DNA of 64,000 bases from Carpediemonas membranifera BICM (lineage: Eukaryota > Protista > Fornicata), in the NCBI GenBank assembly GCA_019828565.1, contig JAHDYR010000038.1, positions 875,781-939,780 of the forward strand, in the 5' to 3' direction. The translations under genes were made by a program, and so were the position numbers. Position 1 is the first letter of the stretch. Every line of letters begins with the position of its first letter. The notes under the pieces were generated by a model. The model saw only the letters and a list, made by a program, of their open reading frames with translations. It was not told the DNA's origin and ran no database searches. Shown here piece by piece: positions 4,603 through 51,676 of this stretch.

Positions 4603-6187
4603 GGTGGCTGATGTTCCTCAGGAGAGTCCTCGCCTTTCGATGATCCTTGCTGCATTCAAGTACGTTAGCCACATGTCTTTCGTTGAGGACTGCTGTTGCC
4701 TTGCTCCTCGTGCGAAAGTAACCCGTTATGCCTGATCTTGCTACAACCGCTCTGTGTCCTTTGGGTTCAAGGGATACTGTGAGCGGCTTCTTGATGAGAT
4801 CAGCCAGCTTAGGTGTTGCTGCGATGCCATCAATTACTCTGTCCATGAAGGTCGGGCCGTCGGGCACTACCAGTCTCAAGCCACACTCCTTTAGGGTGGT
4901 AGCCCACAGCGTCGATGGATCTAGTAGGTTCGTGTTGAAGTCTCCCATGACAAGAACTTGGAGCCCTTGCTCAATAGCTTTCTTCACCTCGGAGGACAGT
5001 AGAGTGTGGAACTCTTTCTTGGCTTGTGCTCCCGTGCATGGACTATAGATGGACATGACACGGACCTTCAGTTTGCCAGCTGTTACAAACACGCAGCCTA
5101 GGTCAGCTTGAATCAACCTTGGAGAGTGGGGTTGGTTCTCGACGTATGTGCAGAGCTCAGCTAATTCCTTCCTCAGCATGATGCCTACGCCTAGATGCTT
5201 TGTCTCGGACTCTGACTTGATCACTCCGTGGTATAGCAGGACCTTGTCATTCGTTGTGGGCAGCTCCGGGGACTGGGCCCACCACCATAGCTCCTGAATG
5301 GCCATGATGTCCACGTCTTGTACTAGAGCAAGAGTCATCTTGGTGATGTTGAGTGATGTGCAATTCCACGAGTAGAGGTGACCATTTACTGGTCGTCTAC
5401 CTGCTTGACTTCGCCCTCTCTGATTCCTGAAGGTCGCAGGCGAGACTCGCGTGGCTAAGCTTGGAGCTGGCGTGGAAGAAGCCGGTGGCTCAACCTTACT
5501 CCAGTTACCGTCGTGAGCTCGGGCACTCTGGAGAGCTTTGAACACCGGAGAAAGGTCCCACGCTTCGCTGACCCATGCTGTTTCTGCCTTCTGTATGAGG
5601 GCATCCATGTCTCCTCGAGTCATGGGCCCTCTCAGTCTGACTTTGCGGAGCCCTCGCACTGGCTTGTTGGGGATTCTCGGGACTAGAAACCAATGATCCG
5701 GCGCTCTGTAGGACCTCTTGACTACTCCTTTGGAGTTGTCTGCCGAGGGAGGAACGTTGAGAGCCAGAAGCTCTGCAGCAGATTGCGGTAGGTCTCGGTG
5801 AGGAGGGCACTCCCAGTAAACTTGCTGAGCCGTCAACTGATTGCTGAAGGAGCTGTCGTTATTCACCGTCGCTATCCTGATGAATGGCTGTTCTAGGCTG
5901 TTTGGAGGGACTATGCCTGCCGCATCCGCCACCGCTATCATCTTGGCAAGAGGATCAAACCATTCCCACCCTCGCCGAGCTGGGCTCCGCACTGCAATAA
6001 ATTGACGGCACGTCATAGCCTGTCTGGCCCTATCACCTGTGGGGAAGGAGCAGCCACCCTTAGGTGCTATTACGTACTCCTTGAGGATGTGGTGCAGCTC
6101 CTCAAGCGTTGGCAGGTGGAGGTCTTGGAGTAGTAGCACGGCCAGGTCGGGCAGGAGAGAGGACCAGTTGCCGATGAGGACATCCAA
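4523..6187 (-). CDS. LINE polyprotein segment containing the apurinic-like (APE) endonuclease, about 4740-5380
   Basis: SWNCTSL, DIMAIQE, GVGIML, SIYSP, VMGDFN, PTF..RVID, GHRAV motifs. Confidence 0.88.
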   Translation of the reverse strand: MDVLIGNWSSLLPDLAVLLLQDLHLPTLEELHHILKEYVIAPKGGCSFPTGDRARQAMTCRQFIAVRSPARRGWEWFDPLAKMIAVADAAGIVPPNSLEQPFIRIATVNNDSSFSNQLTAQQVYWECPPHRDLPQSAAELLALNVPPSADNSKGVVKRSYRAPDHWFLVPRIPNKPVRGLRKVRLRGPMTRGDMDALIQKAETAWVSEAWDLSPVFKALQSARAHDGNWSKVEPPASSTPAPSLATRVSPATFRNQRGRSQAGRRPVNGHLYSWNCTSLNITKMTLALVQDVDIMAIQELWWWAQSPELPTTNDKVLLYHGVIKSESETKHLGVGIMLRKELAELCTYVENQPHSPRLIQADLGCVFVTAGKLKVRVMSIYSPCTGAQAKKEFHTLLSSEVKKAIEQGLQVLVMGDFNTNLLDPSTLWATTLKECGLRLVVPDGPTFMDRVIDGIAATPKLADLIKKPLTVSLEPKGHRAVVARSGITGYFRTRSKATAVLNERHVANVLECSKDHRKARTLLRNISHLDVDQAFQKPDVDYQPMGVGGHCGLT

Positions 6188-6968: not shown

Positions 6969-7304
6969 GTTGTTGCGGGCCACACTAGAGGGGGGCGCTA
7001 TCGAGGCCTTCAGCGGCGATGTTGTTGCGGGCCACACTAGAGGGGGCGCTATCGAGGCCTTCAGCGGCGATGTTGTTGCGGGCCACACTAGAGGGGGCGC
7101 TATCGAGGCCTTCAGCGGCGATGTTGTTGCGGGCCACACTAGAGGGGGGCGCTATCGAGGCCTCCAGCGGCGATGTTGTTGCGGGCCACACTAGAGGGGG
7201 CGCTATCGAGGCCTTCAGCGGCGATGTTGTTGCGGGCCACACTAGAGGGGGGCGCTATCGAGGCCTTCAGCGGCGATGTTGTTGCGAGCCACACTAGAGG
7301 GGGC
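6969..7304. repeat. Tandem repeat, 51-bp unit, about 6.5 copies, coding a 17-aa repeat (PSSVARNNIAAEGLDSA) in the LINE polyprotein
   Basis: Unit gttgttgcgggccacactagagggggcgctatcgaggccttcagcggcgat. Copies differ mainly in G-run length. Confidence 0.95.
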
Positions 7305-8856
7305 TCTTCTTGGACGATATTCAGCATATTGCAGGCGCCTTGCTTCTGCGCTCCTCACAGACGGAAAAAGAGGCGTGAAGTGCAGAGCACTCAGTCTAAT
7401 GAGGATGTAATCGGTTTTGAGCATCGTTTTGAGCGCGTCAATATTGAGAGGAAGTGTAGAGAACTCGGATAATGCTGGGATGGTTACTGAGACTGTGTTG
7501 GCATCATATCGATGAGCAATAAGCACATTTTTTCCAAAAGAGCGATGCAATATTGCGGAGGTCTGTGGTGGATAGGAAGGCACTACCAATGTCGCTAGCG
7601 GTGGTGTGTGTGGTTAAAGTGCGCACCGTGGATCTCCACGAGGAGTTAAGATCCACTGTACCATTCTGGATGGCGGAGGCAAGTTTCGACACGGCTTCTC
7701 GTCTCGTCAGGCCCGTCATACCCAGAGAGACAGCAAGTGAGTGAAGGCCACAGTTGCCGTCGGCGTGAACTGGGATGCTCATGAGAGGGCCCCAACGGGC
7801 GTTAGGCTCCTCAGCTACGATCGGGGATGATGGATAAATGCTGTTCTCTTCGCAAGACGATATTTCTTTCCGAATCTGCCGCGCAACCTCTTCCACGCTA
7901 ACAGGGATCGGGCTTGCGAGCTCAACATCAGAGTTTGAACAGGAACTTATGGATATAGTAGAGTCATCGACTGGATAGGCCTTCCGGCGAATGGGAGAGA
8001 TAAGGCTGTCTGATAAGGTATTCGATAAGGAAGACTGAAGGTCGGCCGCTGTGGCTCCACCCCATTCGGCATAAAGCTCAGTCATCGCATGTCCTCCCAA
8101 CACGGGAGAGGCGCCATACAGTAAGTGGATTACCTCGAGGCCCATGAACGGCGTGAGGTTGAGACCATCCGGAGATACAATGGGGCCGGGCCGGCCGGAG
8201 TGAGCGATGCGGGGACCAAGAGGCTCTCTTTGACCGACTGCCTGCCATGTCAGGCTCGGAGAGTTCGGGACAGTGGATATGGTTGGAGGCCAAGGATCGT
8301 TCCGTTGGTCTAACACTGTAGGGCATCTGGCGGAGATGAAATCTGCGAACTTGCTCCAGTCCATGCTGCTAGCTGGGGGGAGTCCCGTGAACCTGCAGTG
8401 GATTAGGGCAGCCTTAAGCGTTCCAACCGTGTGGACAAGATCATAGGCAATGAGGGGAAAGAGTTTGAGGATACCTTCCCGGATGGAGAGCCCAAATGCA
8501 GCTGCAAGGTGCTCAGCATCTTGGAGTAGGTCATTACAGGCATCCTTAGCCCGCTTATAGCGGGCGTTGTCCCGTTTTAGGTTTGGGATTGCCACCGAGA
8601 CGAAATTGCCCGTCGATGAGTGTGTTGCAAGCTCAGTTTTGAAGGGATGGATGATTACGGGGTCCCCAATAAAGGCAATGCCTGCTAGTAGTTGTCTTTT
8701 GAGGACAGGAGGGGCGGATGAAACATATTTGAGGTGCTTCCTCGTCAGGAAGCGTTGGTCGGCGATACTGCTTTGAGCAGCAGTGGTACTTTGTGGTTGC
8801 GGACCAGTGTCTTTCGCTAAGATTGGGCCTCTGTAGCCAGAACTACTTTTGCCCAT
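7305..8856 (-). CDS. LINE polyprotein N-terminal region with OTU-like cysteine protease (about 7370-7775)
   Basis: Starts MGKSSS 9 nt inside the 5' end. PVHADGNCGLHSLAVSLG (catalytic Cys)...LRNIASLF, a frameshift near 7530 in homopolymer runs, then GKNVLI...ILIRLSALHFTPL (catalytic His). Confidence 0.75.
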
Positions 8857-12695: not shown

Positions 12696-12928
12696 TGAGT
12701 TTTTGTTAAACAGCACTTTAGGTACTAACCTGCGGGTCTGTCACGATTCCGGCGTCACAGTCTCTTCGATGAAAGAGCAGTTTAGCACGACATAGAAATG
12801 AGATGAACATCGGTGTGGAACATCACTGTGGCTTCAGTCGTCTGATCTGAAGAAGAAGACGGGCTCGAAACTGGCATAGCGACCAACACACCTCAGCCAG
12901 CAGGGGCACCATAAATAATATATTTACA

Positions 12929-22957: not shown

Positions 22958-23306
22958 CGCCACCAAGCCGTTCTTAACCTGCCCGCCGTGGGACACGAGT
23001 GCAAGGAACCTGGGTAGTGGTGACGAACAGGACCAGTGTGTCGACAGATGGTGTCAGATGCGCTCGTGTGCCTGTAAGGTAGCGCTGTGCCGCGCAGGAT
23101 TAGAATTGTTCAGTCTAAAAAGATCCCGCCCAGAACCGTCGCTCTTACCATCGCCGACGCCCTCATGTCCGCTACCCTTCTGGTGTACGACAGGTGGGCC
23201 GTCAGACTGAACCTGTTCAGTCCTCTGGAGTTCATCCCAGGGGGGTCGACAGCTTAAGTCACCTTTACATGAATCCTCCGCATAAACCCTCTAAATACCA
23301 CAAGCG

Positions 23307-23398
23307 TGTGCTATTGAAGGGTCAAACAATGTGTTTACTGAGGAGGTTTAGACCCGTGGTGGTGTAAATGGTCCAAACTAGGGGATTTGAATGCATCA
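23307..23398 (-). repeat. 3' LTR of Gypsy 2 (92 bp)
   Basis: Identical to 27860-27951; preceded on the minus strand by GAAGGAGGGGGGGTAG. Confidence 0.97.
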
Positions 23399-23424
23399 CT
23401 ACCCCCCCTCCTTCAATGCGATGT

Positions 23425-26400
23425 CTAATCCTGCCGAGTGCCATTTGATTGGCGGGCCGACATTCTGAGCTTCAAATCATCAAACCGCTTCATGGCTTCC
23501 TCTAGGGGTGTATTCACCTGCAGGTACTGCTGAAGTATCGCATTGCCTCTCATATCCTCGTCTGTTGGGTTTCTCCACGTGTCGTCTGCTGGTTCGTATC
23601 CTAACCAGCGCACCTTCACCTCTGGCGTCTTCATCACGTCCTTCTTGATCCTGTGCGTGACGATCTCTTTGATATACGTGTGCATACGGTCCTTGGCGCA
23701 TTCTGCCTTCGCCTTCTCCTCATCCCAGTCGCCTTCTGCGAGCTTCAGATGCTTCACGTGCTTCTTATACGTCTTGTTCGTCTCGGGGTCCCTTATCACG
23801 AACGAGCTGGCGTTTCCAGGTGCCTTCTTGACCACCTGAAGTGGGCCTCTCCATCGTAGCTGGTACTTCCCTCTCTGTTCTGCATCCCTGTCGACCATGA
23901 CCCACGCCTTGGCTGTGATACGGGTCGGTGTCCTCTTGTTGTGCTTGTCCTGTCTGGCCTTGGCCGCGTCGTACGTCTTCTTCGCCGCGTCCCTGCGCTG
24001 TTGAGCTCTCATCTTCTCGTTCCGGACCATCTTGTCAATGACGTCCGTAACGTCGGCTCTCTCCTGGTTCGACAGTGTCATCTTCCCTTCCCGCTCTGTG
24101 GACACCACTAGCTTCCAGGGTGACGTGCCTGTCGTGGCAGATCTAGCCTGGTTGATGATGTTCTGAACCGCTGGCAGTAGGCCCATCCATTGCTTCGTGC
24201 CGCGCTGATGCATCTCGTCCCTGAGGTGGCGGTTCACTTCGCGATTCCTGCGCTCAACGATCCCATTCTCCTCGTGATGGTACGGGGTGGTCGTCTTCGC
24301 GCCCCCGCCTAGCTCTGCCGCGAACGACTTGAACTCCTTCGAGTCGAACTGCCGTCCGCTATCGGTCACCCACTCGACCGGGGGCGGGAAGTGTGTGAGG
24401 TATCTTTCCCTGATTGCTCTGATGGTGGCGGCGGAGGTCACCGTCTTCAGTGGGCACAGGGTGACCCACCTCGTCGACTCCTCCACCAGCACCAGGATGT
24501 ACCGGTAACCCTGGTCTGCCTCTGCCATGTTGATGGTGTCGGCGAACACGCGACTGAACGGCGACGCTGGCATGCGCAGCTGCTCCTGATATTGCTCGCG
24601 TGACCGGTGTTCGGCGTTCTTCTGGCACACGGGGCACTCCTTAACCATCCTCTGGACGTCCGTGTCCGCAGTGTCCCAGCGCAATCCCTTATCCTCGAGC
24701 TTCCACAGCGTCTGGTCAACCCCGTGGTGACCGGTGCCAGGTCCGTGAACGGACTTGAAGCGTGGCAGCTTCTGGGACTCGGGTATGGCCGGGAACGTGC
24801 CCTCCTCTTCGGGCTCGGCGTCAAGGGTGTCGCCCTCGTCTGTCCCGGCTGCTTCCTCGGTGTCGCTTTCGTCTGCCTCGTCGCGCTCGCGGTCAGGCTG
24901 TCCTGCCGCCTCTTCGCGGAACCGAACTCTCGGCTCGTCGGCGGCGACTTCTTCCGACTCTTCCTCCGCTGCGTCGACTGCACACATCACGGACACGATC
25001 GCACCCTGCTGCTCTGGTGTCAGGCTCTCGGCTTCTGCGCGGGGCATTCTGGACAGGCCGTCCGCGACCGTATTAGACTTACCAGGCACGTGGGTGATGC
25101 TGAACTTGAGGTTGCCCAGCTCAAGTGCCCAGCGCTGCACCATGGGGTCGACGTTGCCCCACGTGTACACGAGGTTACGGTGGTCCGTGAACATCTCAAA
25201 CTCCCCTTGTGGCTAGGAACCGTCTCATCTTCCTCGTGGCCGCTATGATGGCGAATGCCTCCTTGCGGTAGGTGCTCCACTTGCGCTGGCTTGCTGTCAG
25301 GGCCTTGGAGAAGAACATCACAGGTCGCTTCGACCCGTCGTCCTCGACTCTGACCAGCACTGCGCCGACACCGGTGTCGGACGCGTCGGTGAACAGCTGT
25401 AGGCGGTCGTCAGGGCCCGGTGTGACCAACAGTGTGGGGGAGGTGACGATCTTCTTCAGTCTCTTGAACGCCTCTCTCTGGGGGTCGCCCCACACGAACG
25501 TCTGGCCCTTGATCTCCAGCTTGCGGATCGGCTCGGTGATGTCCGCGTAGCCGGGGATGAACTGGGAGAAGAAGTTGAAGATGCCCAATGTGGACCTGAC
25601 GTCACTCACGTTTGTCGGGTCGGGCAGCTCCTGGACACCCTGGACGCGCCATGGGGGATGCGCTTTCCCTCCGCCGACACTATCCATCCGAGGTACTCCA
25701 CCTCCGTCAACCCGAAAAAGCACTTGTTCTTGTTGAGCTTCAGCTTCTTCTCTCGCACCCGGTCCATCACCCGCATCAGGTTCGCCTGGTACTCTTCCCA
25801 GGTCGACCCATAGACGATGATGTCGTCCACGTACACAAGACACGCCGTGCCCAGCATGTCCGCGAAAGCCTCCTCTAAGGCCTCTTGCATATGGCCAGCC
25901 GCGGTGGCAAGGCCGAACGGCATCGTAGTGTAGGTATAGTGCCCCTTGGAGTACGTGAACGCCAGGTACTCCTGTGTGTCGGGGTGCACCGGGACCTGAT
26001 GGAAGGCCTTGCTGAGGTCAAGTGCTGCGAAGTACTTGTTGCCCCTCAGCCTCTCGATCAGCTCTTCCGTCGACGGCAAGTCGTGCTGAGTCATGGACGC
26101 CAGGAGCTCGTTCAGTGGCGAGTAGTCCATGCACGGCCGCCACGTCCCGGCCTTCTTCCGCACCATGACCACTGAGCTGCTCCAGGGAGACTTGGTTGGG
26201 ATGATGATCCCGCTTTCCTCCAGCTTCTGCATCTCTGACCGGAGTTCATCCTCCACCTGTCTTGGGAACCTTCGGGGCAGACGGAAGTAGGGTCGGGCGT
26301 CCTTCTTCAGCGTGACCTTGAACGGCTTAAGGTCTGCTGGTTCGCCTGCATCGCCGAAGCAGTCGCTGTATCTCTCGGCCCAGTCCTCTGTGAGCTTGGA

Positions 26401-27846
26401 GATGACCTGGATGGGGTCTGCTTCGGTGTCAAGGTTGCGGTTGATTAGGCCGAGGGAGTCAATCACCTCCATGTTGATGAGGAACGACTCGGCCTTGTCC
26501 ATCGCATACCAGGTCGGCGTCGCGGTGACCTCTCTGTCGAGGTGGAGGGTGATCGGCACATCTGACAACACTCGGTAGACCCTCCTCATCGACTCGTCAG
26601 CCAAGCGGACTGTCTCGCCCCGCGTGGCGATCTTCAGTCCCTTCTCGACGGCCCAGTCCCTCGGCACGACGCTGAACGAGGAGCAGGTGTCCATGCGGAC
26701 GATCAACTCTTCGCCCAGCAGACTGGCCTTCTCCTGCCAGATAGTCTTGGACGCTAACATAAAACAGAAAGGATACTCAGATGGCTTTACAACTGTGCAC
26801 TGGTGCGACTTGTGGCCGAACTCGCCGCACCTGAAGCACTTCGGCTCCTCGTGTGGGCAGTCGGCCGAGTCGTGACCCTTTTCGCCGCAGTTGAAGCAGC
26901 CGCGGCCCCCTTGCCGCCGCTCAGGCTTGGCCCCCTCGGCCGCGCCGTCATTGCGTCTGCGCTCTCCCGTCCTCGCTGGCATCTTCCGCTCCTCTCTCGG
27001 CTTGCTCTGCAGTGACTCGAGCTGCTTCTGTAGGGCCGCGAGCCGGCTGCTCGGCACCAGGTCAAACTCTCGCATGGCATCTGTTCGGGCCCGTAGGTAC
27101 TTTGCTATGACCTTCAACGACTTCGCGACTGTTGACTTGGAAAGAACAACAGAGCGAAGAGACGATGCGATCGTCTCGTCATCGAGGCTCGCCAGAACGA
27201 TCTCCTGGAGCTCTCTAGCATCCAGGGATCCGACCTTCTCGAACAGATCTACCATATCCGTGAACACATGGCGGTAACGGGTGAAAGAGGTCTCACGGAG
27301 CTTGCGAAGCTCGCGGTACGCGCGCTGAAGACTGATATTGGTTAGTGTGGCCTCAGCCATCACCACCCAGCGCTCATCGCGCTTCCTCCTCGTTGTCTTC
27401 GCCTCCTTCTTCTCTTGGTCTTGAGCCATGATGTACCGGAGCAAAGCGTCGTCCCGGGCGGTCGTCTTGCCGCTTGTCTTCTTCTTCCGGGCCGGGTTGG
27501 CGATGAGTGTGCTCCGGGCGTCATCCTCGGAGTCGCTCTGGGCGTGCGCGTCTTCGCCGCCCCTGCTGCTGTCGCTACCCTCGTTGGCGCTGAACATCTC
27601 CTCGTCGTCTTCACTCGAGCTGTCAGAGCTGTCATCGGAGCTTTCGTCGTCCTCCAGAGCTTGGTATGCGTCCTTGATACTTGTTCTCACTTTCGCGTCG
27701 ATGCACTCGAAGAGGGTCTTCGGCTTGACCTCATCTTCAGCATAGAGTGCGTAGCTCATGCGGAACCTCACCCAGTCGGCTGCAGTGTGCCGGAGATACT
27801 TCGGGTAAGTCCCTTTTGGGTCGTCGTCATCGTCATCCTTCTTCAT
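23425..27846 (-). CDS. Gypsy 2 gag-pol polyprotein (frameshifts near 25650 and 25200 at G/C runs)
   Basis: ORFs 25606-27846, 25196-25843 and 23425-25194 give the order gag-PR-RT-RH-IN-chromo. Confidence 0.9.
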
Positions 27847-27859
27847 GCGTAGTAATTAC

Positions 27860-27951
27860 TGTGCTATTGAAGGGTCAAACAATGTGTTTACTGAGGAGGT
27901 TTAGACCCGTGGTGGTGTAAATGGTCCAAACTAGGGGATTTGAATGCATCA
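27860..27951 (-). repeat. 5' LTR of Gypsy 2 (92 bp)
   Basis: Identical to 23307-23398. Confidence 0.97.
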
Positions 27952-27968
27952 AAGCGCGAATCCTTAAA

Positions 27969-28622
27969 ATGCGCAAGAAGCGACGCATGAGCACGGACGG
28001 CCCTACGCTCACGATTGTTCTTGAACAGGCGCAGTTTGAGCTAGTGAATGTTAAGAGAGGTGGTACTATGCGCACAGAACTGCTCTCCTCCGATCCTAGA
28101 ACGGCAGAGATGAATGTCCGCCCTGAGCTCGTCCATCAGACTCTTCTGAACCTTCTAGATTGCCCTTTGTGCAAGTCTGGGCATCTTAAGATTCTCATCC
28201 ACACTGAGAGTGGCGTCGTCATCTCCGTCTCCCCCAGCATCCGCATCCCCAGAACGTACGGCCGGTTCGCCCCGCTCATCGTCAAGGTCCTCGAGGAAGG
28301 TGTCCTCCGTACCGTCGTGGAGGGCGAGGAGGGCGAGACTCTTATGGAGCGGCTGGAGGGGTCGATCGAGCAGCACATGGCCGGCCGGCGCGTGGTCCTG
28401 GAGCCGAACCTGTCTAAGCTCGTCGAGATCAACCAGTACGTCAACCATCAGCTCGAGGCCGCAGCTGACCACACCTTCATCATTGGCGTCTCGACTGCCG
28501 AGGAGGTCGAGCTCGCCTACCATGTCGACGACTTCATCACCGTCTCCGAGTACGAGGTTGCCGCGTCGTACCTCGCTACAAAGGTCACCACCGCCTTCGA
28601 GAGGCTCTATGCTATCGAATGA
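27969..28622 (+). CDS. EMG1: rRNA small-subunit pseudouridine methyltransferase Nep1/Emg1
   Basis: IVLEQAQFE, RPELVHQTLLNLLDCPL, IRIPRTYGRF, AFERLY. Confidence 0.92.
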   Translation: MRKKRRMSTDGPTLTIVLEQAQFELVNVKRGGTMRTELLSSDPRTAEMNVRPELVHQTLLNLLDCPLCKSGHLKILIHTESGVVISVSPSIRIPRTYGRFAPLIVKVLEEGVLRTVVEGEEGETLMERLEGSIEQHMAGRRVVLEPNLSKLVEINQYVNHQLEAAADHTFIIGVSTAEEVELAYHVDDFITVSEYEVAASYLATKVTTAFERLYAIE

Positions 28623-31397: not shown

Positions 31398-31684
31398 GGT
31401 GGTCTAGATAATGGCTATTGTTAATACATTAACTATAAACTAGACGTCTCTGTCACGTGGGCGTCAGCGGCAGGGCTGGCCTGGTTCAATGTCCTTCCAT
31501 TCGGCATTGGAAGGCAGGGTGCCTCGTTCTGGTACTTGGTGTTTGATGTAATGTATGATGTTTTTCATCGTGAAGTCAAGCCCAGCAACACGGATGTTTA
31601 CAATCAGCACCTCAACGGCAGAACTACTTCTACTCCACCGGCTGTGTCTCCACCATGGCCACCGCACTTTAAGACACAATCGCA

Positions 31685-33319: not shown

Positions 33320-33403
33320 TTGTTGTAAACCTGTATTCTACCTGGCTGAGGCTTTGAACGCCGTATTGGCTCGACTTCGTTCTCTGCGCAGTTTAGCCCA
33401 AGA

Positions 33404-43621: not shown

Positions 43622-43734
43622 GGTATTGTAAAGTCAGAATTCGTACCGGGCGGTTACTACTGCCACGGCGGCCTTCAGGTATCGAAGTCAATGAGTCTGA
43701 AGTATCATAGAGTGCACAGTGCAAGCACTGCGTC

Positions 43735-43825
43735 TCTCCACTTCAATTAGCTTGCCCGGAGGCGAAGACTGGCGGCTGGTTAGCCGTAATTGGTGTATTG
43801 GGGTTATAGTTGGGAAGACGGGCTG
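43735..43825 (-). ncRNA. Candidate omega-RNA scaffold overlapping the 3' end of Fanzor 1
   Basis: CAATTA[CGGCT-AACC-AGCCG]...[GCC-TCCG-GGC]...TAATTG; same architecture as copy 2 with compensatory changes. Boundaries approximate. Confidence 0.6.
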
Positions 43826-45217
43826 GATTTCTGAAAGCACTGGCTTGATACTGTGCATCCGTCATGAGGCCGCAATCCAAGATGTTCTGTGCAGCAGTCT
43901 TGTCTCTGTGGGAGAGATTGAGCCAAGTGGATGTAGTAGGATCGGAATTGAGGCGTTGCTGTCTGTACCATGGAGCACCTTGACAATTCGGGTTGTGGCA
44001 TCGCATCGTGCGCCTCGTGTAGCGAGTTCTACGGAACCTCGCGCGGCAGAAGGGGCAGACGAGTGAGGTTCGGAACTCGTTAGTCATCCGCACTTCAGCA
44101 GTGATGTTGAAAGCTCTCATGATGTGTGCTAGTAAGGTAGCAAAGCGACCATGCGGCGCGCATGGATGCACCCGACGGGGCGTCTTGAATCTAGCGCTTC
44201 CGTAGAAGACAACCAGCCTGGTGGGGGCTGCCCGGGGAGGAGCAATACCGCGAGGGAGTCGCCGAGGAGTCCATCCTAGGGTGCGAGCAAGCTGCTCCCC
44301 AGCTCTGTGGAAGTGCTTTTGACGCAAGATGTGGTTCGTCAGGCGCACTCTGCGGAAGCTCTTGACCATCCCAGCGTCGAATATTTCCTGCTCGTGGAGG
44401 AGCACAAACCTAACCGAGTTTTGTAGACTATCTAGATTTGTACTTTTGAATGACGCAGGAGTCATATCGAACGCGAAGCTGGGGGTCTTGGTGTACCCAC
44501 ACTTCGGGACCACACCGGAGGTGATGCCATCTGGGTGGCGGATGAAGAATCCACCCAGAGCCCGAGCACCCGGGTCGAACCCATGAGGTGGGCATCGGGG
44601 TCTGGCGCGGGGCGAGCATCCGCGTCATCCACACCCAGACGCTCCCGAGCCTTTCGCTTCATCGTCGGGTTGCCACTGGCACGTCTGCTGACGTATGGCA
44701 GAGCACCAACTTGGACCGTGAGGTCCACGGCGACCCCATCTGTCTTGACAGACAGCACCCGACGGATGTTCGGAGGAAGAGCCTCCAGCTGCTCTCGCGT
44801 CATGCGCTCAGTGGCGTGATGCTCCGGGTCGACCCCAAGTTGGGCAAGCCAAGCCGGGTTCAGCACGTTGAGAGAACAGGGAACGTGCATGAACCCGGGG
44901 CGGATCGGAGCCATCGGGACAAGCGGAACAAGCTTGGGGCCAGCCAGCGGCTTGTCACCCGGAAGAGGTGGATGGGCGGTGTTGAATGCCGCAACCATAT
45001 CCGTGAGCTCTCCCAGAGCCGCGGAGATCCGCCAGACGCAGGGCAGCGTGAGTAGAACGCCCTCGTCGACTCGTCCCGGAGTTGAGATCTTTGCCTTCGT
45101 GAACGAGCAGAGCTTGTTCTCCAATCCGGCGTAGAAGTCCGCGATGAAAGGAATCACGTTTCTACGGTTATGGAGAATGGAGGATATGGAGAACTTGACC
45201 GTATAGATGCTGGTCAT
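43743..45217 (-). CDS. Fanzor (TnpB-family RNA-guided nuclease), about 491 aa after restoring one G near 44580
   Basis: RuvC-I GFDPG. RuvC-II has Gly in VVFYGS and a relocated Glu in TNEFRTS. Zn finger CPFC...CHNPNC, RuvC-III HRDKTAAQNI. No transposase or RT in the element. Confidence 0.88.
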
Positions 45218-45710
45218 GTGAAGCTCTGCGTTTTGCGGTGAATGAACCGATCACTAACAACACACATCAAAGACGACAGACGTTTAATGAACGAGACTAT
45301 GCAGTGATAATGGCGAGAATTAGAAGAACTGAAGTGTTTTATCTTCAGGCAGCGGCATAGAAGAGCCCGCTGTGCGATGGAAGGCCATGGTGATGATTGC
45401 AAAGACGTCATGATCAAGACCCCGAAATCCGACAAGCAGAAGAGAGCGGATGGAAGTAAGATGGGGTAGACGATAGGTGGGAAGCTAGTTGCTTGGCGAG
45501 AGGACTGGAGAAGCACTGATTGATGACCCCCGACGATGATGACTGACTATCGAAATATCACTCTCAAGAAGAAGGAAGGGAGAGCGGGAAGGGGTAATGA
45601 AGTATCATAGAGTGCACAGTGCAAGCAGTAAAACAGACTCTCAATCGTCTGTAGCAGACTTCAGAGTCGTTCTTCGCAGGATAAGGTCAAGTGCGCAAAA
45701 TCGAGAACTC

Positions 45711-46583
45711 ATGTTTGAAGCTCTCCTTGAAGAAGCCGGTGTTCTTAAGCGCATTCTTGATGCTGTGAAAGAACTTGTGAACCAAGCAAATGTCTCTTTC
45801 TCGCCTACGGGCATCACAATCCACAGCATGGACAGTTCATGCGTAGCGTTGCTCCACCTTGTCCTATGTGATGATGGTTTCCAGCACTTTAGATGCGACG
45901 CCTCCACCGTGGTTGGCATCAACTTTGTAACAATGTCCAAGATTCTCAAAGGCGCCCGCAACGACGACAGCGTCACCATCCGGAAGAAGGACGAGGACGA
46001 CTTCCTCACCCTCATCCTCGAGTCCAAGGACGGCAAGGACGTCGTCTCCTTCGAAATGAAGGAGATGGACATCGACGCCGAGTCCCTTGGCGTGCCCGAG
46101 ACTGAGTACGAGGTCACCGTCTCTATGGACTCCGCCTCCTTCCAGAACAAGATGCGCTACCTCGCACAGTTCGGCGACGCCGTTACCATTGAGGCCGAGC
46201 CGTCCTGCGTGAAGTTCAGCGTGAACGGCGAGCAGGCCTCCGGGTCGATCTCGCTCCGGTCCTCCTCCTCAGGTGACGAGGACGACGGGCTCGACGAGGG
46301 TGTCAAGATCAACCGCAAGAACGACGTTTCGCTGTCGTTTGCCCTCCGGTACTTGCAGACGTTCACCAAGGCGACGACGCTCTCGAACCGTGTCCGCCTG
46401 TCCCTCTCGAACGCCGTGCCCCTCTCCGTGAGCTACGATATTGAGGGCCTCGGCTTCATCACATACTATCTCGCGCCCAAGATTGACGACGATGAAGATG
46501 ATGAGGAGGACGAAGACGAGGAGGTTGAGGAGAACGCCGAGGAGCAGGACGTCAAGGAGGAGGACGAGGAAGAAGACTACTAA
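45711..46583 (+). CDS. PCNA: Proliferating cell nuclear antigen with acidic C-terminal tail
   Basis: MFEALL...SMDSSCVAL...FALRYL..FTKAT.LS...YYLAPKI followed by about 30 mostly D/E residues. Confidence 0.97.
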   Translation: MFEALLEEAGVLKRILDAVKELVNQANVSFSPTGITIHSMDSSCVALLHLVLCDDGFQHFRCDASTVVGINFVTMSKILKGARNDDSVTIRKKDEDDFLTLILESKDGKDVVSFEMKEMDIDAESLGVPETEYEVTVSMDSASFQNKMRYLAQFGDAVTIEAEPSCVKFSVNGEQASGSISLRSSSSGDEDDGLDEGVKINRKNDVSLSFALRYLQTFTKATTLSNRVRLSLSNAVPLSVSYDIEGLGFITYYLAPKIDDDEDDEEDEDEEVEENAEEQDVKEEDEEEDY

Positions 46584-46678
46584 GCGATAAAAACTGCAGA
46601 ATCGGGTCGGGTCGTGACATTTACATTGTTAATGGTACGAATGTATTGCTCTCTACTCCAGCAGTAGCAAGCGATCAG

Positions 46679-47146
46679 ATGCTGTTTCGACGCAAAACTA
46701 TCGTTCCAGAGGAAGTGAAGAACCCAAGATACAGGCATTTGCCATCTACACATGCTGACGGCACAAACGACATGATGACGAAGTGGGTAGGCCGTTTCTT
46801 CCTCTCCATGGAGGAACGACGCCGTGCGGTGATTGGAAGGTATCCAATGTTCGACAGACCGCATACTATCACCTTTGTGGAAGCGCTTACACCCTATCTC
46901 GGCGCATCCTTCCTATTTGGCACCGTTGTCGGCGGTTCATTCGGGGCCACGGTTGCAGCCTCGAACAGCCGGCTTTACCCCAACTGGCGAACCCGCGTGG
47001 ACGCATCCTTCTTGGCCTTCCTCCGCTACGGCTTCAAGACTGGCCTGTACTGCGTTGCCGCCGCTCCCGTCGTCCTCGGCAGCACAGCTTTGGTGACGAA
47101 GCTCATCCCCACAGAGGGCGAGGAGGCCGGCACTAAGGAGCCCTAG
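46679..47146 (+). CDS. Small membrane protein, possibly Tim17/22/23-like
   Basis: FLFGTVVGGSFG GxxxG helix, then RTRVDASFLAFLRYGFKTG; weak resemblance only. Confidence 0.4.
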   Translation: MLFRRKTIVPEEVKNPRYRHLPSTHADGTNDMMTKWVGRFFLSMEERRRAVIGRYPMFDRPHTITFVEALTPYLGASFLFGTVVGGSFGATVAASNSRLYPNWRTRVDASFLAFLRYGFKTGLYCVAAAPVVLGSTALVTKLIPTEGEEAGTKEP

Positions 47147-47378
47147 TCCGTCTGTTGAATATCAAGGGCCCCTGACACGGTCGGAATAAAGTCAGCCGGC
47201 CACAGCCGCGATGCTGGTGGATACGTGCAGTGTTATATTGAGCCGCCAGTAGCTCCATCCAGGCGAGAGCGAGAACTTAAATCGACAGCGAGGGTCATCA
47301 GAAGATTCGCCGTTGAAAATTTTGGCGTGATGATAAGCAACGAAGGGGTGTCGTTATGCGTCACCAGTACCTCGCTAA

Positions 47379-48109
47379 TGATGGAACGAATGAATGAAGC
47401 CACTCCGCAGAAGAAGAAGCCCTCCACAGCCCCTTCTGGGCGAAAGGTGCAACGAATCCGCCCTACTCCACGAGCTACCCCTGCACCGGACACAAATGCG
47501 ATGCCAAAGACTGTTATACCGCGATCAAAGCCGCTGCCGTCCTTCCTGCACGGCTCCACGGGCACGGTGGCCCACGAGTCCCCAGCCATCCGCCTCCGCC
47601 GGGAACTGCACGCCGACATGGTCTCCAAGCGCATGGAGGCGGCCCGGCTACAGCGGCCAGTGACGGAAATTGCTCAGAACCGTCGCATTGACGTCGATGT
47701 GATTCAGCGGGCTAGGACGATCGACAGTCAGAGCATCGAGCGGGTCGTCACCTCGAGGGGCGGGCTCCGTTCTCAGCGCACCATGGACCAGATGCGGCCA
47801 ATGGCCAGGAAGAAGGCCGTGGAGAAGCCCCCGGCTCCACCTGTTGCCCCGCCCGAGTTCGTCGAGGAGTCGTGGGTCGCCAGCCCCCTGATGGCCAAGC
47901 AGGCGCGCATAGTGGAGGAGAATCAGACGCCGAGGGATATGCGGGATGTCCGGTCGTTCATGGAGCGGCGGTTTAAGGTCAGCCGCATGAAGGACAGCGA
48001 GGCGATGGCCCGTGACCAGCTCGGGCGACCCCTCAGCGCCATCAGCGGGCTGCTCGCCCTGGAGACCGTGAAGATGGCGGAGGAGATCAATGCAAAGGCC
48101 GGGATGTGA
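47379..48109 (+). CDS. Hypothetical basic protein
   Basis: Open frame with host codon bias; start uncertain. Confidence 0.6.
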
Positions 48110-48309
48110 GGTCCGGCCCACTGTGCTATAGTAAACGCGTCGGGCATCCTCGCGCAGCTTTGTGTTTCGATGGCCGCGGTTGGTTGGTTGAGAATCTGTG
48201 ATGATCGTCTATAACGTTCTATTCCAGGTCATGTCGCTTTTAATTGTCTCACTGATCATATGGGACCTGTTTGTTCGCCTATCGTCTCTTATTCAGCATC
48301 AGCAAGTGC

Positions 48310-48780
48310 ATGAAAGCTAACCCCGCTCCTAATAGCCCCACAGACGAGACAAAACCACCGATCGAGCGTCCTGTCACGCAGGAGGAGTTCACTGACAACA
48401 TGAGTGACTTCTTCTCCGCCCGCCTGGCCCAGCTGGGCAGCAGGCGGATGGCCCGGCAGACCCTGCTGGCCGACGCCCAGGCCAGCCACCCCCACGGCGC
48501 CCACAGCACAGAGGACACCATGACAGTGAGCCCGGCGATGATGCAGCAGGTCATGGCAGACATCAAGGCGGACAACGCGTTCCTGCAAAGGGCCGTGGAG
48601 AAGCTGGAGGAGGACGACGAGGAGGCGAAGAAGGGCCTGTTCCCGCCGCTGACGATGGAGTTCTTCAAGAGAAGGCTTGATGCGCAGGACGCCATCAAGG
48701 CGCGAGAGCGACGCATGAAAGAGGTCGAGCAAACGGGGAAGAAGGGGGGCATGGCGACCGGGGAGAAGAAGGAGGACTGA
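48310..48780 (+). CDS. Hypothetical protein
   Basis: Open frame with host codon bias. Confidence 0.6.
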   Translation: MKANPAPNSPTDETKPPIERPVTQEEFTDNMSDFFSARLAQLGSRRMARQTLLADAQASHPHGAHSTEDTMTVSPAMMQQVMADIKADNAFLQRAVEKLEEDDEEAKKGLFPPLTMEFFKRRLDAQDAIKARERRMKEVEQTGKKGGMATGEKKED

Positions 48781-48827
48781 GTGATTGGCCCAAAGACCTG
48801 CCTCAGAACCATGGCACCGCGTGATTT

Positions 48828-50042
48828 ATGTTACCCCGCCGTAAATGGACAGAAGCAACGATGAGCGAACCTGAAACAAGCGATCCCGTGAGGAATGTGC
48901 TCAATATGATCAATGAGTATGAATCTGTATGCTCAGAGATCCGCAAGAAGGAGATGGCGATCCACGCAGCCCGCCGGTGCGTCGCAAAACTCAAGGCCCA
49001 GCGAGATCACCCCGACAAGGCTGTCTGGGAAGCGATAACAAGGAATACAGTGGCGGAGTACGTTGAAAGAGACATCTCCAAGCGCCGAGACCAGGAGCGC
49101 GCGCTAGTGTCCCGTTTGGTGGCCGACAACCAGACCTCGCTCGCCCCCTCGGTCGCCTTCGAGACACACACAGCAGGATCCAGCGCCACACACACTTCGA
49201 CCCCGGTGATGCGGATCAACGTGGTCGGTACGGCCCACACGGGCTTCCACAAGCGGTTTGAGGCGCCCCGCCAACCGTTCCTCGGCAACGCAGCCGAGGC
49301 CGAGGGCCACCTCACACTCACTGCACCCAGCCTGATCCCCCGCGATCTCAAGCCGGACGACCACCTGTGGATCCTGTTCTGGTTCGACCGGAACGCCCAC
49401 TTCCGCCTGGCGGTGCTTCCCCCACGGGCCACAACCAGACACGGAATGTTCGCGACCCGGACGCCTCATAGGCCCAACCCCGTCGGCCTGACACTGGTGC
49501 GGGTGGGAGACATCGACCGGGAGGCGGGTGTAATCTCAACTATCGGGGCCGATCTCCTCGATTGCACCCCGATCCTGGGGATACGGCGATACGACCCAAC
49601 GATGGACGACCTGTCTTCCCGGCCCATGGGGTGGCTGAGCGACCAGACCCTCCCCCTGCACTACGACGAGGTCAAACGGGACGTCCCCGACCTGCTCCGG
49701 CCCCGGGAGGTCCGCGGCATGGATGACCCCCCGATCGTGGCCAGGCTGGCCGCAGTACAGGCCATACACAGCTCGCTGGACGTGACGGCGTTGGTCCGGG
49801 CCCATCTGGGCCGGTATGCAGACGTCACACACACCCGCCGGGTCGGGGCGAAGAAGGAGGACTCGCGGTTCCCCGGGCGCCTGACCATGGCGGTCGGGTC
49901 CTTCCGGGTGGTCTATCGCGTGGGGGAGGCCGAGGTGTTGGTGGAGGACGTCGTGTCCTCGTTACCCGCCCACGTCGACCAGGCCGAGCCCGAGGCCGCC
50001 GCTCATGCACGGTTTACCGCGCAGTTCCAGCCGCTGGTATGA
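48828..50042 (+). CDS. trmO: TsaA/TrmO (YaeB)-like tRNA m6t6A37 methyltransferase with N-terminal coiled coil
   Basis: RFEAPRQP, HLWILFWFD, GMFATRTPHRPNPVGLT, GADLLDCTPIL. Confidence 0.88.
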   Translation: MLPRRKWTEATMSEPETSDPVRNVLNMINEYESVCSEIRKKEMAIHAARRCVAKLKAQRDHPDKAVWEAITRNTVAEYVERDISKRRDQERALVSRLVADNQTSLAPSVAFETHTAGSSATHTSTPVMRINVVGTAHTGFHKRFEAPRQPFLGNAAEAEGHLTLTAPSLIPRDLKPDDHLWILFWFDRNAHFRLAVLPPRATTRHGMFATRTPHRPNPVGLTLVRVGDIDREAGVISTIGADLLDCTPILGIRRYDPTMDDLSSRPMGWLSDQTLPLHYDEVKRDVPDLLRPREVRGMDDPPIVARLAAVQAIHSSLDVTALVRAHLGRYADVTHTRRVGAKKEDSRFPGRLTMAVGSFRVVYRVGEAEVLVEDVVSSLPAHVDQAEPEAAAHARFTAQFQPLV

Positions 50043-50532
50043 GCGCGGTGTAGTAGCAGTAAAGCCATCCCCCGGAAGCGCCGTGATGATGGCTCCAACT
50101 CGGCATAATATAACAGTAACCAATCTGGCGGCTTGCTCGGCCGGGCTGAGGAGAGTGGAGAGGTATGACTTGTGATGTACTAGGACCGTGAATTTACGAA
50201 AATCCCCCAAGAGATGGACACGATGGACAAGGGTCAAGGAAGATTATGTAAGCTGAATGGACATAAAACTCACACATGTTGGCCGCATGGGCGGTACCTC
50301 GGTAAAACGCAGGTTAGCCGCTCAGCTCCTGTGCTATTGAAGGGTCGAACAATGTGTTTACACTGCGCAACACTGCCCTGTCTCCCTCCTACTCACGTCT
50401 TAAGTCGGTAGGGAGATCGTCTTCTCCAAGGCTTCCACAAAGCGTCTTCTTCGTGGACGTCAGCACAGCTGCAAACATCACAATCGCTCACACGTCGTCT
50501 CATTGTCTTCTATTCCACATTAAATTCACTTC

Positions 50533-51560
50533 TTGGACAACCCCAGGTCAATGGGCCGTCTGCTCAGCCTGAGCACCGATGGGGTCTGTGTGGCGGTGAC
50601 GGTTAAGCGAGGCGGCCACTATCGACCACAACATGATGCGAGCATGCCTGTTCGAAAGCGAGCGAGGGGGCGGGAGAAAGAGCGCCCCCGACTCGGGACC
50701 AATAATGCCGAGGCTCCGCCCGCGCCGGATCCTGATGCCCACCTCATGGGGTTCGACCCGGGCGCGAGGTCCATCGAAGGGTATTACATCAGGCACCCCG
50801 ATGGCACCACCAGCTCCGGCGTCCTTCCAAAGTGCGGATACACTAAGACGCCAAGTTTCGGCTTTGATATGACGGCCGCGTCGTTCAAGAGCACAAGACT
50901 AGTGAGTATCAACAACTCTATTAGGTTTGTGCTGGACAACGCGAACGACATTTTCGAGGCTGGAATGCGTAAGTCTTTCCGCCGAGTGCGCTTTGCGAAC
51001 CACATCCTTCGCCAGAAGCACTTCGCCCGCTGCGGCCAACAGTTGGCTCGGGAGTTCGGTCGCCACCATCCCGTCGCCACCCCCATTCGCCTGAAAGTCT
51101 TCTATGGGAGCTCGGGATTCAGTCCACGCCTGCTGGTATGTTCATTCCTTGCGCGCCATATCGAAAGTTCGCGAGAGAGATAGTTCCCCTTCCCAAGAGG
51201 TATAACATTGTCGTCGATCTTAACATGGTTAACGAAGATCGCACCACCGTCGTCTGCCCTCACTGCCACGCCCCCTACAAGCGAGTTCGTCCGCGTGATG
51301 ACCAGCACGTTCACCCACATCGTGTGATGCTCTGCGAAAATCCACAGTGCCGTGGTGCTCAGTGGCGCGCAACAGTTCCTGATGCTCTGAATGTTGATCA
51401 TCGGGACAAGAGTGCTGCAGAGAACATCCTGTGGCGTTCTCTTGCCACGGAAGATGAGCTCAGTGGCTCTCCGTTCAGTCGCACATTGATCCCGCGCCTT
51501 CCAACATCATTCCAGTATCATCAATTGGCTAACCGCCAACATTCGTCTACGGACGGATGA
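50533..51560 (+). pseudogene. Fanzor copy 2, N-terminally deleted and frameshifted near 51130
   Basis: STDGV, HLMGFDPGARS, KVFYGSSGF, VNEDRTTVVCPHC...CENPQC...HRDKSAAENIL. Collinear with copy 1 but lacks roughly the first 155 aa. Confidence 0.85.
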
Positions 51561-51575
51561 TGTTGTACAGTTTGG
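51495..51575 (+). ncRNA. Candidate omega-RNA scaffold overlapping the 3' end of Fanzor 2
   Basis: CAACATCAT...[TTGGC-TAACC-GCCAA]...[GTC-TACG-GAC]...ATGATGTTG. Boundaries approximate. Confidence 0.6.
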
Positions 51576-51676
51576 CACTTTGATCGTTCCTTTCAGGCCC
51601 TGTCTTGGAGGTTCGAAAAATGTGTTTATTCTGCGCAACAGCTCCGACCTTACAGCCCGTTTGCCACCCTCGGCTG

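Follow-up and report, generated by a model that had tools for sequence, protein, structure and literature searches.

Fanzor-like nuclease genes in non-autonomous elements with Ty3/Gypsy-like ends at gene starts of Carpediemonas membranifera

Two decayed nuclease-bearing elements

The window analysed here, a stretch of 64,000 nucleotides (G000:C26:875781-939780; contig JAHDYR010000038.1) from the 24.2-Mb assembly of the protist Carpediemonas membranifera, contains two loci with remnants of a very divergent TnpB/Fanzor-type RuvC nuclease gene (Table 1). Both loci are decayed copies of two related, recently proliferated non-autonomous element families, here named F1 (the family of copy 1) and F2 (the family of copy 2), and the nuclease is the sole gene of either family. 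The anatomy, copy number, target site, end homology and repeat asymmetry of these elements are established here, and they support the view that the Fanzor gene is the only cargo of non-autonomous carriers whose ends derive from long terminal repeats (LTRs) of the Ty3/Gypsy type. A first-pass annotation of the window had already seen two related nuclease remnants without a transposase. This is borne out by the motifs GFDPG, NEFRTS or NEDRTT, CxxC..CxxC and HRDK; the F1 and F2 proteins show 44% identity, and no transposase was found at either Fanzor locus. A non-coding block that the annotation regarded as common to both copies is weakly conserved (~60% identity).

Letters were read directly in the window and in 88 further loci (364 kb), and the remainder of the genome was covered by coordinate-only or short-pattern searches. 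F1 has at least 60 copies if solo units are counted; at least 30 loci are 96-99% identical to copy 1, and the full length is ~2.49 kb. F2 comprises ~56 copies, with at least 40 loci at 95-99% identity to copy 2, and its longest copies measure ~2.2-2.3 kb. The nuclease genes of copies 1 and 2 lie on opposite strands, and both are damaged. Copy 1 is missing a single base near 44577 (an additional base follows this position in other copies) as well as ~500 bp near 45089-45094, and in copy 2 ~618 bp are gone at ~50534 and the frame shifts near 51120-51140.

Table 1. Features of the two nuclease loci and of the resident Ty3/Gypsy element (positions within the window; TSD, target site duplication; ORF, open reading frame; UTR, untranslated region; a caret marks the motif junction)
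Feature	Position	Strand	Remarks
Gypsy TSD AAGCG	23302-23306 and 27952-27956		5 bp
Resident Ty3/Gypsy, 4.6 kb	23307-27951	-	gag with CCHC, reverse transcriptase, integrase with chromodomain; identical 92-bp LTRs
Motif GCGCAT^TTTA at Gypsy	27952-27974	-	Gypsy end 27951 exactly 17 nt away
TSD GAGTC, left, copy 1 (F1)	43693-43697		same pentamer at 45664-45668
30-bp repeat X, outer terminus (TG...)	43698-43727	-	3' end in Fanzor sense; sequence just outside it is different in each copy
F1 Fanzor/TnpB-like gene remnant	43743-45217	-	two ORFs: 44462-45217 and 43743-44513
F1 RuvC-III motif HRDK	43899-43910
F1 zinc finger	43983-44057
F1 RuvC-II motif NEFRTS	44064-44081
Purine-rich tract adjoining inner repeat	45570-45597	+	polypurine-tract-like; pyrimidine-rich 5' UTR in Fanzor sense; same layout in F2 and at Gypsy 3' LTR
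Second, internal 30-bp repeat X	45598-45627	-	exact copy of outer X
36-bp extension Y, true F1 end (...ACTTCA)	45628-45663	-	imperfect inverted repeat of other terminus; from end alignment of copies
TSD GAGTC, right, copy 1	45664-45668		pairs with 43693-43697
Host motif CGCAG^GATA of PCNA gene (ATG 45711)	45675-45683	+	junction between 45679 and 45680, exactly 16 nt from copy-1 end
Host motif CGCAG^GTTA	50308-50316	+	junction between 50312 and 50313, exactly 17 nt before copy 2
TSD GCTCC, left, copy 2 (F2)	50325-50329		pairs with 51641-51645
F2 terminal repeat beside motif	50330-50372	+	first 31-32 nt match outer end of Gypsy LTR; motif-like G^TTTA 16 nt from inner end
Pyrimidine tract adjoining repeat	50373-50389	+	complement of polypurine-tract-like purine tract
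F2 Fanzor/TnpB-like gene remnant	50533-51560	+	GFDPG, NEDRTT, zinc finger and HRDK present
F2 distal repeat (...CAACA)	51600-51640	+	outer part consistently unlike other repeat
TSD GCTCC, right, copy 2	51641-51645		pairs with 50325-50329

Ends and target site duplications

Alignment of many F1 ends showed that, on the Fanzor 3' side, the copies diverge right outside the 30-bp repeat X, while on the other side they stay homologous for 36 bp past the second X. With the end set at 45663, a 5-bp TSD appears; the layout of F1 is thus X-body-X-Y, and the second X is internal. The annotation had correctly recognized the exact 30-bp repeat around copy 1 but had closed the element at 45627/45635, short of its real end and of the TSD GAGTC. 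The termini of F1 read TGAAGT... and ...ACTTCA and form an imperfect inverted repeat of 15-16 bp. Perfect 5-bp TSDs flank 17 of 28 informative copies, and five more have a single mismatch. X matches the genome at 118 places (reversed control: 0), exactly in at least 100 of them, and the two 30-mers of an F1 element are identical to each other in nearly all copies. Many occurrences of X belong to 66-bp solo X-Y units with TSDs of their own, which could be recombination products of the two X copies or miniature elements.

Several explanations for these units and for Y were discarded. A structured RNA or hairpin formed by the 66-bp unit was rejected (z from -0.56 to +1.17). The first bases of Y are GTAAAG and CAG closes the host motif, which raised the possibility of a mini-exon (the 30-mer) followed by a 5' UTR intron (Y), or of a spliced-leader-like gene, but no RNA-like contig joins 45627 to 45680, and the contigs of the neighbouring PCNA gene start past the motif. 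In four of 28 copies, Y includes the TSD in reverse complement (about one expected by chance); no general rule emerged, and the idea was dropped.

Y exists as mosaic variants among copies, independent of the element body. Three copies (L004, L006, L007) represent one common deletion derivative with different Y variants, and since all lie within 75 kb, local gene conversion is the simplest explanation. In seven of the eight F1 copies whose last base is not A, this base equals the sixth base before the other end, corresponding to a 6-bp duplication with loss of the terminal A; right ends with this oddity were noted in L004, L006, L021, L031, L036, L045 and L049. Three other F1 copies (L028, L029 and L030; G000:C7, 31-103 kb) share an identical right flank and have different left flanks, and thus represent a locally duplicated promoter region that carries the element. 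At L051 (G000:C13:710300-718300), each unit of a 5.45-kb tandem segmental duplication contains a Y-like sequence 16 nt from the gene-start motif described below, preceded by sequence unlike the 30-mer.

The F2 termini are TGTGC... and ...CAACA. Perfect 5-bp TSDs were found in 16 of 25 paired copies, which is far beyond chance, as in F1. Among the seven discordant pairs are reciprocal swaps between copies close to each other, and these point to ectopic recombination. Of the element copies in general, about a quarter have non-matching TSDs whose halves pair with those of other copies (L073/L080, 22 kb apart on C65; L062/L072; L065/L068; L004/L029), which indicates that ectopic recombination between elements is frequent. 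For copy 2, the annotation had rightly noted the perfect TSD GCTCC and the repeats inside it, and its placement of a purine tract against one repeat of each copy was also correct (Table 1). The repeats of copy 2 are 41-43 bp long and only ~75% alike. The loci, repeats, purine tracts and copy-2 TSD of the original description stand, whereas the end of copy 1 does not.

A divergent TnpB/Fanzor-type nuclease

Three aligned Carpediemonas subfamilies and both window copies possess the D..E..D triad of a split RuvC domain, in which a zinc finger separates the E from the final D, embedded in the motifs GFDPG (with the invariant D), (S/N)E(F/D)RT, CPxC..CxNPxC and HRDK. Direct similarity to known proteins is weak. 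The match to Pfam PF07282 (E 0.01-0.018) stays below the cut-off, searches of solved structures gave a marginal match to Cas12f only (E 0.15), and all 23 database homologues of the nuclease are C. membranifera proteins with J8273 locus tags. Similarity to established TnpB/Fanzor members was found transitively: a family profile searched against 1.8 billion proteins retrieved the outside proteins P0050-P0052 (E 1e-4 to 9e-4), which pass the threshold of PF07282 (the TNB domain of TnpB/Cas12f), and P0052 matches the Fanzor1 structures 8GKH (E 1.9e-7) and 9CER (Spizellomyces, Guillardia). Profile comparison with hhalign gave 95% probability. An AlphaFold2 model based on 21 paralogues had a mean pLDDT of 37.5.

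Codons of F1 and F2 differ by 39, 31 and 60% at the first, second and third positions, respectively, and half of the identical residues are encoded by different codons. This pattern shows long-term purifying selection on the nuclease. In RNA-like contigs, the 3' terminal 370 nt of F1 (43698-44067) and the 5' untranslated part are covered far more deeply than the middle of the ORF. The deep 3' coverage would fit an abundant RNA derived from the element end, for example a guide RNA, for which this region is a candidate; the predicted folding of the 3' region is pronounced in F2 (z = -4.0) and only slight in F1 (z = -0.7). A short, internally deleted F1 derivative (L055; G000:C39:482300-484300), in which the 3' terminal ~370 nt are joined to other sequence and the 5' UTR end, matches the most deeply covered RNA-like contig, and this deletion derivative may be the main expressed form.

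Insertion at a fixed distance from a gene-start motif

The carriers lie beside a short host motif, (G)YGCAG^TTTA (the caret marks the junction from which distances are counted), with variants that include GCAC, GCAT, ^GATA and ^GTTA. In the more general form (G)YGCA(G/C/T)^(T/G)(T/A)T(A/T), it occurs 3-56 nt before many ATGs of the window, for example at 12772-12784, 31660-31675 and 33383-33395. Insertion of the carriers is position specific relative to this junction. In ~30 of 34 F1 copies, the element ends exactly 16 nt upstream of it and Fanzor points away from the host gene. In 21 of 25 loci, F2 starts downstream of it, at a distance of exactly 17 nt; here Fanzor runs in the direction of the host gene, the ATG of which comes after the element. 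A 35-place pattern of the F2 spacing hit 57 sites genome-wide versus none in the reversed control. The Fanzor gene has its 5' end toward the motif in F1 as well as in F2. The end of a third carrier, F3, lies 16 nt (+16) from the junction (window ~23090-23304, minus-strand end at 23304; also at L011, L014 and L056). Its minus-strand sequence, TGTGGTATTT..., is similar to the Gypsy/F2 end. Insertions of the window Gypsy and of two F1 copies lie within a few bases of an F3 end, so that several families are stacked at the same promoter sites; at L056, an F1 solo unit at -16 and F3 at +16 share one motif.

The contigs of the PCNA gene from two small transcriptome-like runs begin at 45689, 10 nt past the motif junction. 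Together with its position before ATGs, this suggests that the motif is a core-promoter or start-site element. No description of this candidate core-promoter or initiator motif of Carpediemonas was found in the literature searched. The relaxed motif was uninformative in the window, where it precedes 34% of the long ORFs and 27% of random positions. The motif-like G^TTTA in the distal F2 repeat, 16 nt from the element end, could replace the host promoter displaced by the insertion.

Relation to the resident Ty3/Gypsy retrotransposon

The insertion marks of the carriers had been likened to those of the Gypsy element in the window. This likeness holds for the TG..CA termini and the 5-bp TSD, and it extends to the position of insertion (Table 1). 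The outer 31-32 nt of the F2 repeat and the outer end of the Gypsy LTR are identical at 31 of 32 positions; beyond the terminal 31-33 nt, blastn detected no similarity between F2 and Gypsy. A purine tract adjoins the inner repeat in F1, F2 and Gypsy alike. The Gypsy family has at least 16 full copies. Short-pattern searches located Gypsy copies with the +17 spacing at C3:174101, C11:582186 and C1:208009, plus one at C65:166782 that is oppositely oriented. Thus, ~4-5 of ~18 Gypsy copies occupy exactly the F2 position, for which the chance expectation is essentially none. Integrase (rve) domains gave at least 150 matches and 716 candidates in the 24-Mb genome, many of them in open frames of 1000-1500 residues. 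These matches reflect a large and diverse load of LTR retrotransposons, and many further helpers are possible among them, as candidates.

Elsewhere in the window, minus-strand ORFs at 2101-6187 with reverse transcriptase and endonuclease/exonuclease/phosphatase domains represent a LINE-like non-LTR retrotransposon, and 6969-7354, within an ORF region, is taken up by a tandem array of 51-52-bp period (six overlapping register copies of 129 nt).

Terminal repeats inherited as two sequences

Reverse transcription of LTR elements rebuilds both repeats from one template in each cycle and leaves them identical. The LTRs of the Gypsy family conform to this prediction, being 100% identical within each copy, unlike the repeats of the Fanzor carriers. 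In F2, the 28-nt cores of an element's two repeats are unlike each other in 22 of 24 copies. Of the 15 outer positions, 8-10 differ in every copy, and the same variant states recur from copy to copy. In F1, Y is present at one end only in all copies and yet lies inside the TSD. The repeats are therefore inherited as two different sequences, and canonical two-jump reverse transcription does not account for them. Rather, the ends are inherited separately, as in DNA-level copying or in the copying of a terminus-to-terminus template.

Like terminal-repeat retrotransposons in miniature (TRIMs), the carriers have TG..CA termini, a TSD in the 4-6-bp range and, ahead of the 3' repeat, a purine tract, but two identical, regenerated repeats are not among their features. 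In the sequences as read, no TGG-type primer site follows the outer repeat in F1, F2 or Gypsy itself, although complementarity to tRNAs was not computed. Regarding the inverted termini expected of cut-and-paste transposons, F1 has the imperfect 15-16 bp mentioned above and the F2 termini share only TG..CA. According to the first-pass annotation, a fixed target or inverted termini in place of direct repeats would speak against a retroelement. The fixed motif and the inverted termini of F1 exist, but alongside direct repeats and a purine tract.

How the carriers may move

We consider it probable that the two loci are dead copies of elements with Gypsy-derived ends, inserted by an integrase acting in trans at the gene-start motif, with terminal repeats that do not behave as LTRs and with copying aided by the nuclease. 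The carriers would have taken over the ends of Ty3/Gypsy LTR retrotransposons, and an LTR-retrotransposon integrase supplied in trans likely inserts them. Integration by such an integrase at a promoter motif is the best-supported step and is likely. The integrase may be tethered to the core-promoter-like motif YGCAG^TTTA, which would place F1 16 nt upstream and F2 17 nt downstream. As the motif faces the 5' end of the Fanzor gene, it could drive expression of the nuclease, amounting to a capture of the promoter. Integration-competent DNA might arise through unconventional copying of a terminus-to-terminus RNA or originate at the DNA level. The nuclease itself would most likely make guide-RNA-directed cuts at unoccupied or damaged sites, whose recombinational repair would then copy the element.

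A number of observations weigh against this account. An integrase acts on linear DNA ends, for which the carriers would need a source, and the 6-bp duplications at some F1 ends are atypical of integrase joining. Only about a quarter of the copies of the single inspected Gypsy family lie at the motif, and no helper family with F1-type ends was found, one Gypsy family having been inspected. The promoter identity of the motif rests on proximity to ATGs and on the contig starts of one gene. The runs that yielded the RNA-like contigs are guessed to be RNA, and the contigs reveal neither their strand nor their real ends. Among recent copies, the three codon positions vary evenly, with no signal of selection; therefore the protein was not needed in cis for the recent spread. 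Apart from these objections, the location of the purine tract exactly at the start of the inner repeat and the identity of the F1 30-mers still look like products of reverse transcription and are hard to reconcile with the asymmetry of the repeats.

Alternatively, the carriers could be DNA transposons of the cut-and-paste or copy-and-paste kind. An integrase-like DDE transposase encoded elsewhere, either Ginger-like or of another type, would then mobilise them, and Fanzor would use homing to restore the donor site, in the way TnpB acts for IS200/IS605. This would explain why both ends are inherited unchanged and why F1 has inverted termini, it would let the 66-bp solo units move as miniature elements, and it fits the established role of TnpB/Fanzor, which requires excision (PMC13565253). 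However, no such transposase was identified and the F2 termini are not inverted repeats beyond TG..CA, while the purine tract and the near-identity to the resident Gypsy LTR end point to parts of a retrotransposon, and Gypsy itself is found at the same insertion position. Excision footprints were not seen either, though no systematic search for them was made. On balance, this explanation appears unlikely.

It is quite unlikely that the carriers form a new class of elements that parasitise an integrase and replicate over their whole length with asymmetric ends, by neither the canonical LTR route nor a known DNA route. A Fanzor ribonucleoprotein would then make or place the copy, for example by generating the linear intermediate or by homing into motif sites, and the elements would be built to capture the host core promoter and to replace it through the distal repeat.

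The annotation had favoured canonical TRIM-like retrotransposition, in which an R-to-R RNA in the retro sense is packaged, converted by the Gypsy reverse transcriptase through two strand transfers, and integrated. Besides the termini and the 5-bp TSD, the purine tract exactly before the inner repeat agrees with this scheme, as does the sequence that follows the tract, which equals the outer terminus as plus-strand priming predicts; the solo units with TSDs of their own resemble solo LTRs, and the F1 30-mers are identical in nearly all copies. Nevertheless, we consider it very unlikely in view of the recurrent differences between the F2 repeats, the one-ended 36-bp extension of F1 inside the TSD, and the fully identical LTRs of Gypsy, and also of the apparent absence, in the sequences as read, of a tRNA-type primer site (TGG...) after the outer repeat and the lack of blastn similarity to Gypsy past the terminal 31-33 nt.

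That Fanzor itself picks the insertion site, makes a staggered cut at a fixed distance from the motif, and thereby captures linear element DNA (occasionally Gypsy cDNA) with fill-in of the overhang is highly improbable: the fixed distances are reminiscent of cleavage by TnpB/Cas12 distal to the target-adjacent motif (TAM), the motif is used nearly always by Fanzor carriers and by a minority of Gypsy copies, and the occasional 6-bp duplication with a lost terminal base resembles end joining, but the sequence between motif and insertion is not conserved, so that no constant guide could pair, F1, F2 and F3 vary in distance and side, nearly all copies have exact termini, classical end joining is absent from the host, and the nuclease is dead in most copies.

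Comparison with known systems and implications

Fanzor1-carrying non-autonomous eukaryotic transposons have reportedly been studied by Saito in 2023, among others. The elements described here resemble such transposons: they are multicopy, have defined ends and TSDs, carry a TnpB-like RuvC nuclease as their sole gene, and possess, at the gene's 3' end, a candidate guide RNA region that reaches the element end. They differ in that the known carriers are Mariner, Helitron, Sola, IS4-like, MuDR and IS607-like, whereas ends, TSD and target position here are those of Ty3/Gypsy, and in that the Carpediemonas protein is too divergent for the Pfam threshold. So far, Fanzors have been described only in DNA transposons (Bao and Jurka, 2013, PMC3627910; Yoon, 2023, PMC10711439; Jiang, 2023, PMC10530073), and according to a 2026 review no retrotransposon encoding Fanzor is known and none is expected (PMC13565253).

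TRIMs and large retrotransposon derivatives likewise depend on an autonomous element, and the carriers share with them TG..CA ends, the 5-bp TSD, a purine tract, short direct repeats at the termini and the occurrence of solo repeats. In contrast to these, their repeats are 30-43 bp long and not homogenised, F1 has an extra 36 bp at one end, and the cargo is a nuclease gene with an intact frame, in antisense. The nucleotide-precise distance from a start feature, presumably due to tethering of the integrase, recalls position-specific LTR elements such as Ty3 at Pol III starts, Tf1 in Pol II promoters and Dictyostelium DGLT-A. However, the carriers target a short motif before protein-coding genes, and their families insert on different sides of it (-16, +16, +17) in fixed orientation; the fixed insertion distance of F1 and F2 from a gene-start motif is newly recognized here. 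Ginger elements, whose transposase is related to the Gypsy integrase, have TG..CA-type termini, short TSDs and DNA-level inheritance of ends as well, but no Ginger-like transposase was found here, and the purine tract and the near-identity to a Gypsy LTR end would be unexpected for Ginger. The homing of IS200/IS605 by TnpB and omegaRNA probably follows the same logic, with a guide from the flank at the 3' end and repair of the cut by copying of the element. The carriers differ from it in making TSDs, in lacking TnpA and in having no conserved TAM beside the insertion point.

The finding challenges the expectation that Fanzor/TnpB nucleases pay only in elements that excise, as here the gene has been kept under long-term selection in more than 100 carriers with Gypsy ends. 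Either the nuclease has another role (homing into empty sites, making a mobile intermediate, or conflict between elements), or the carriers move by an undescribed route. Their precise targeting also exposes a probable core-promoter motif of a deep-branching protist, and, with it, a putative integrase tether that might be identified. Metamonads have no Ku-dependent end joining, and C. membranifera, which possesses alternative end joining and recombination, lacks the origin recognition complex and classical end joining (PMC8516963). In such a host, break-induced recombination may especially favour nucleases of this kind. Lastly, as Bao and Jurka (2013), Yoon (2023) and Jiang (2023) do not mention a Fanzor from Carpediemonas or any other metamonad, the divergent Fanzor clade in Metamonada extends the known range of these nucleases.

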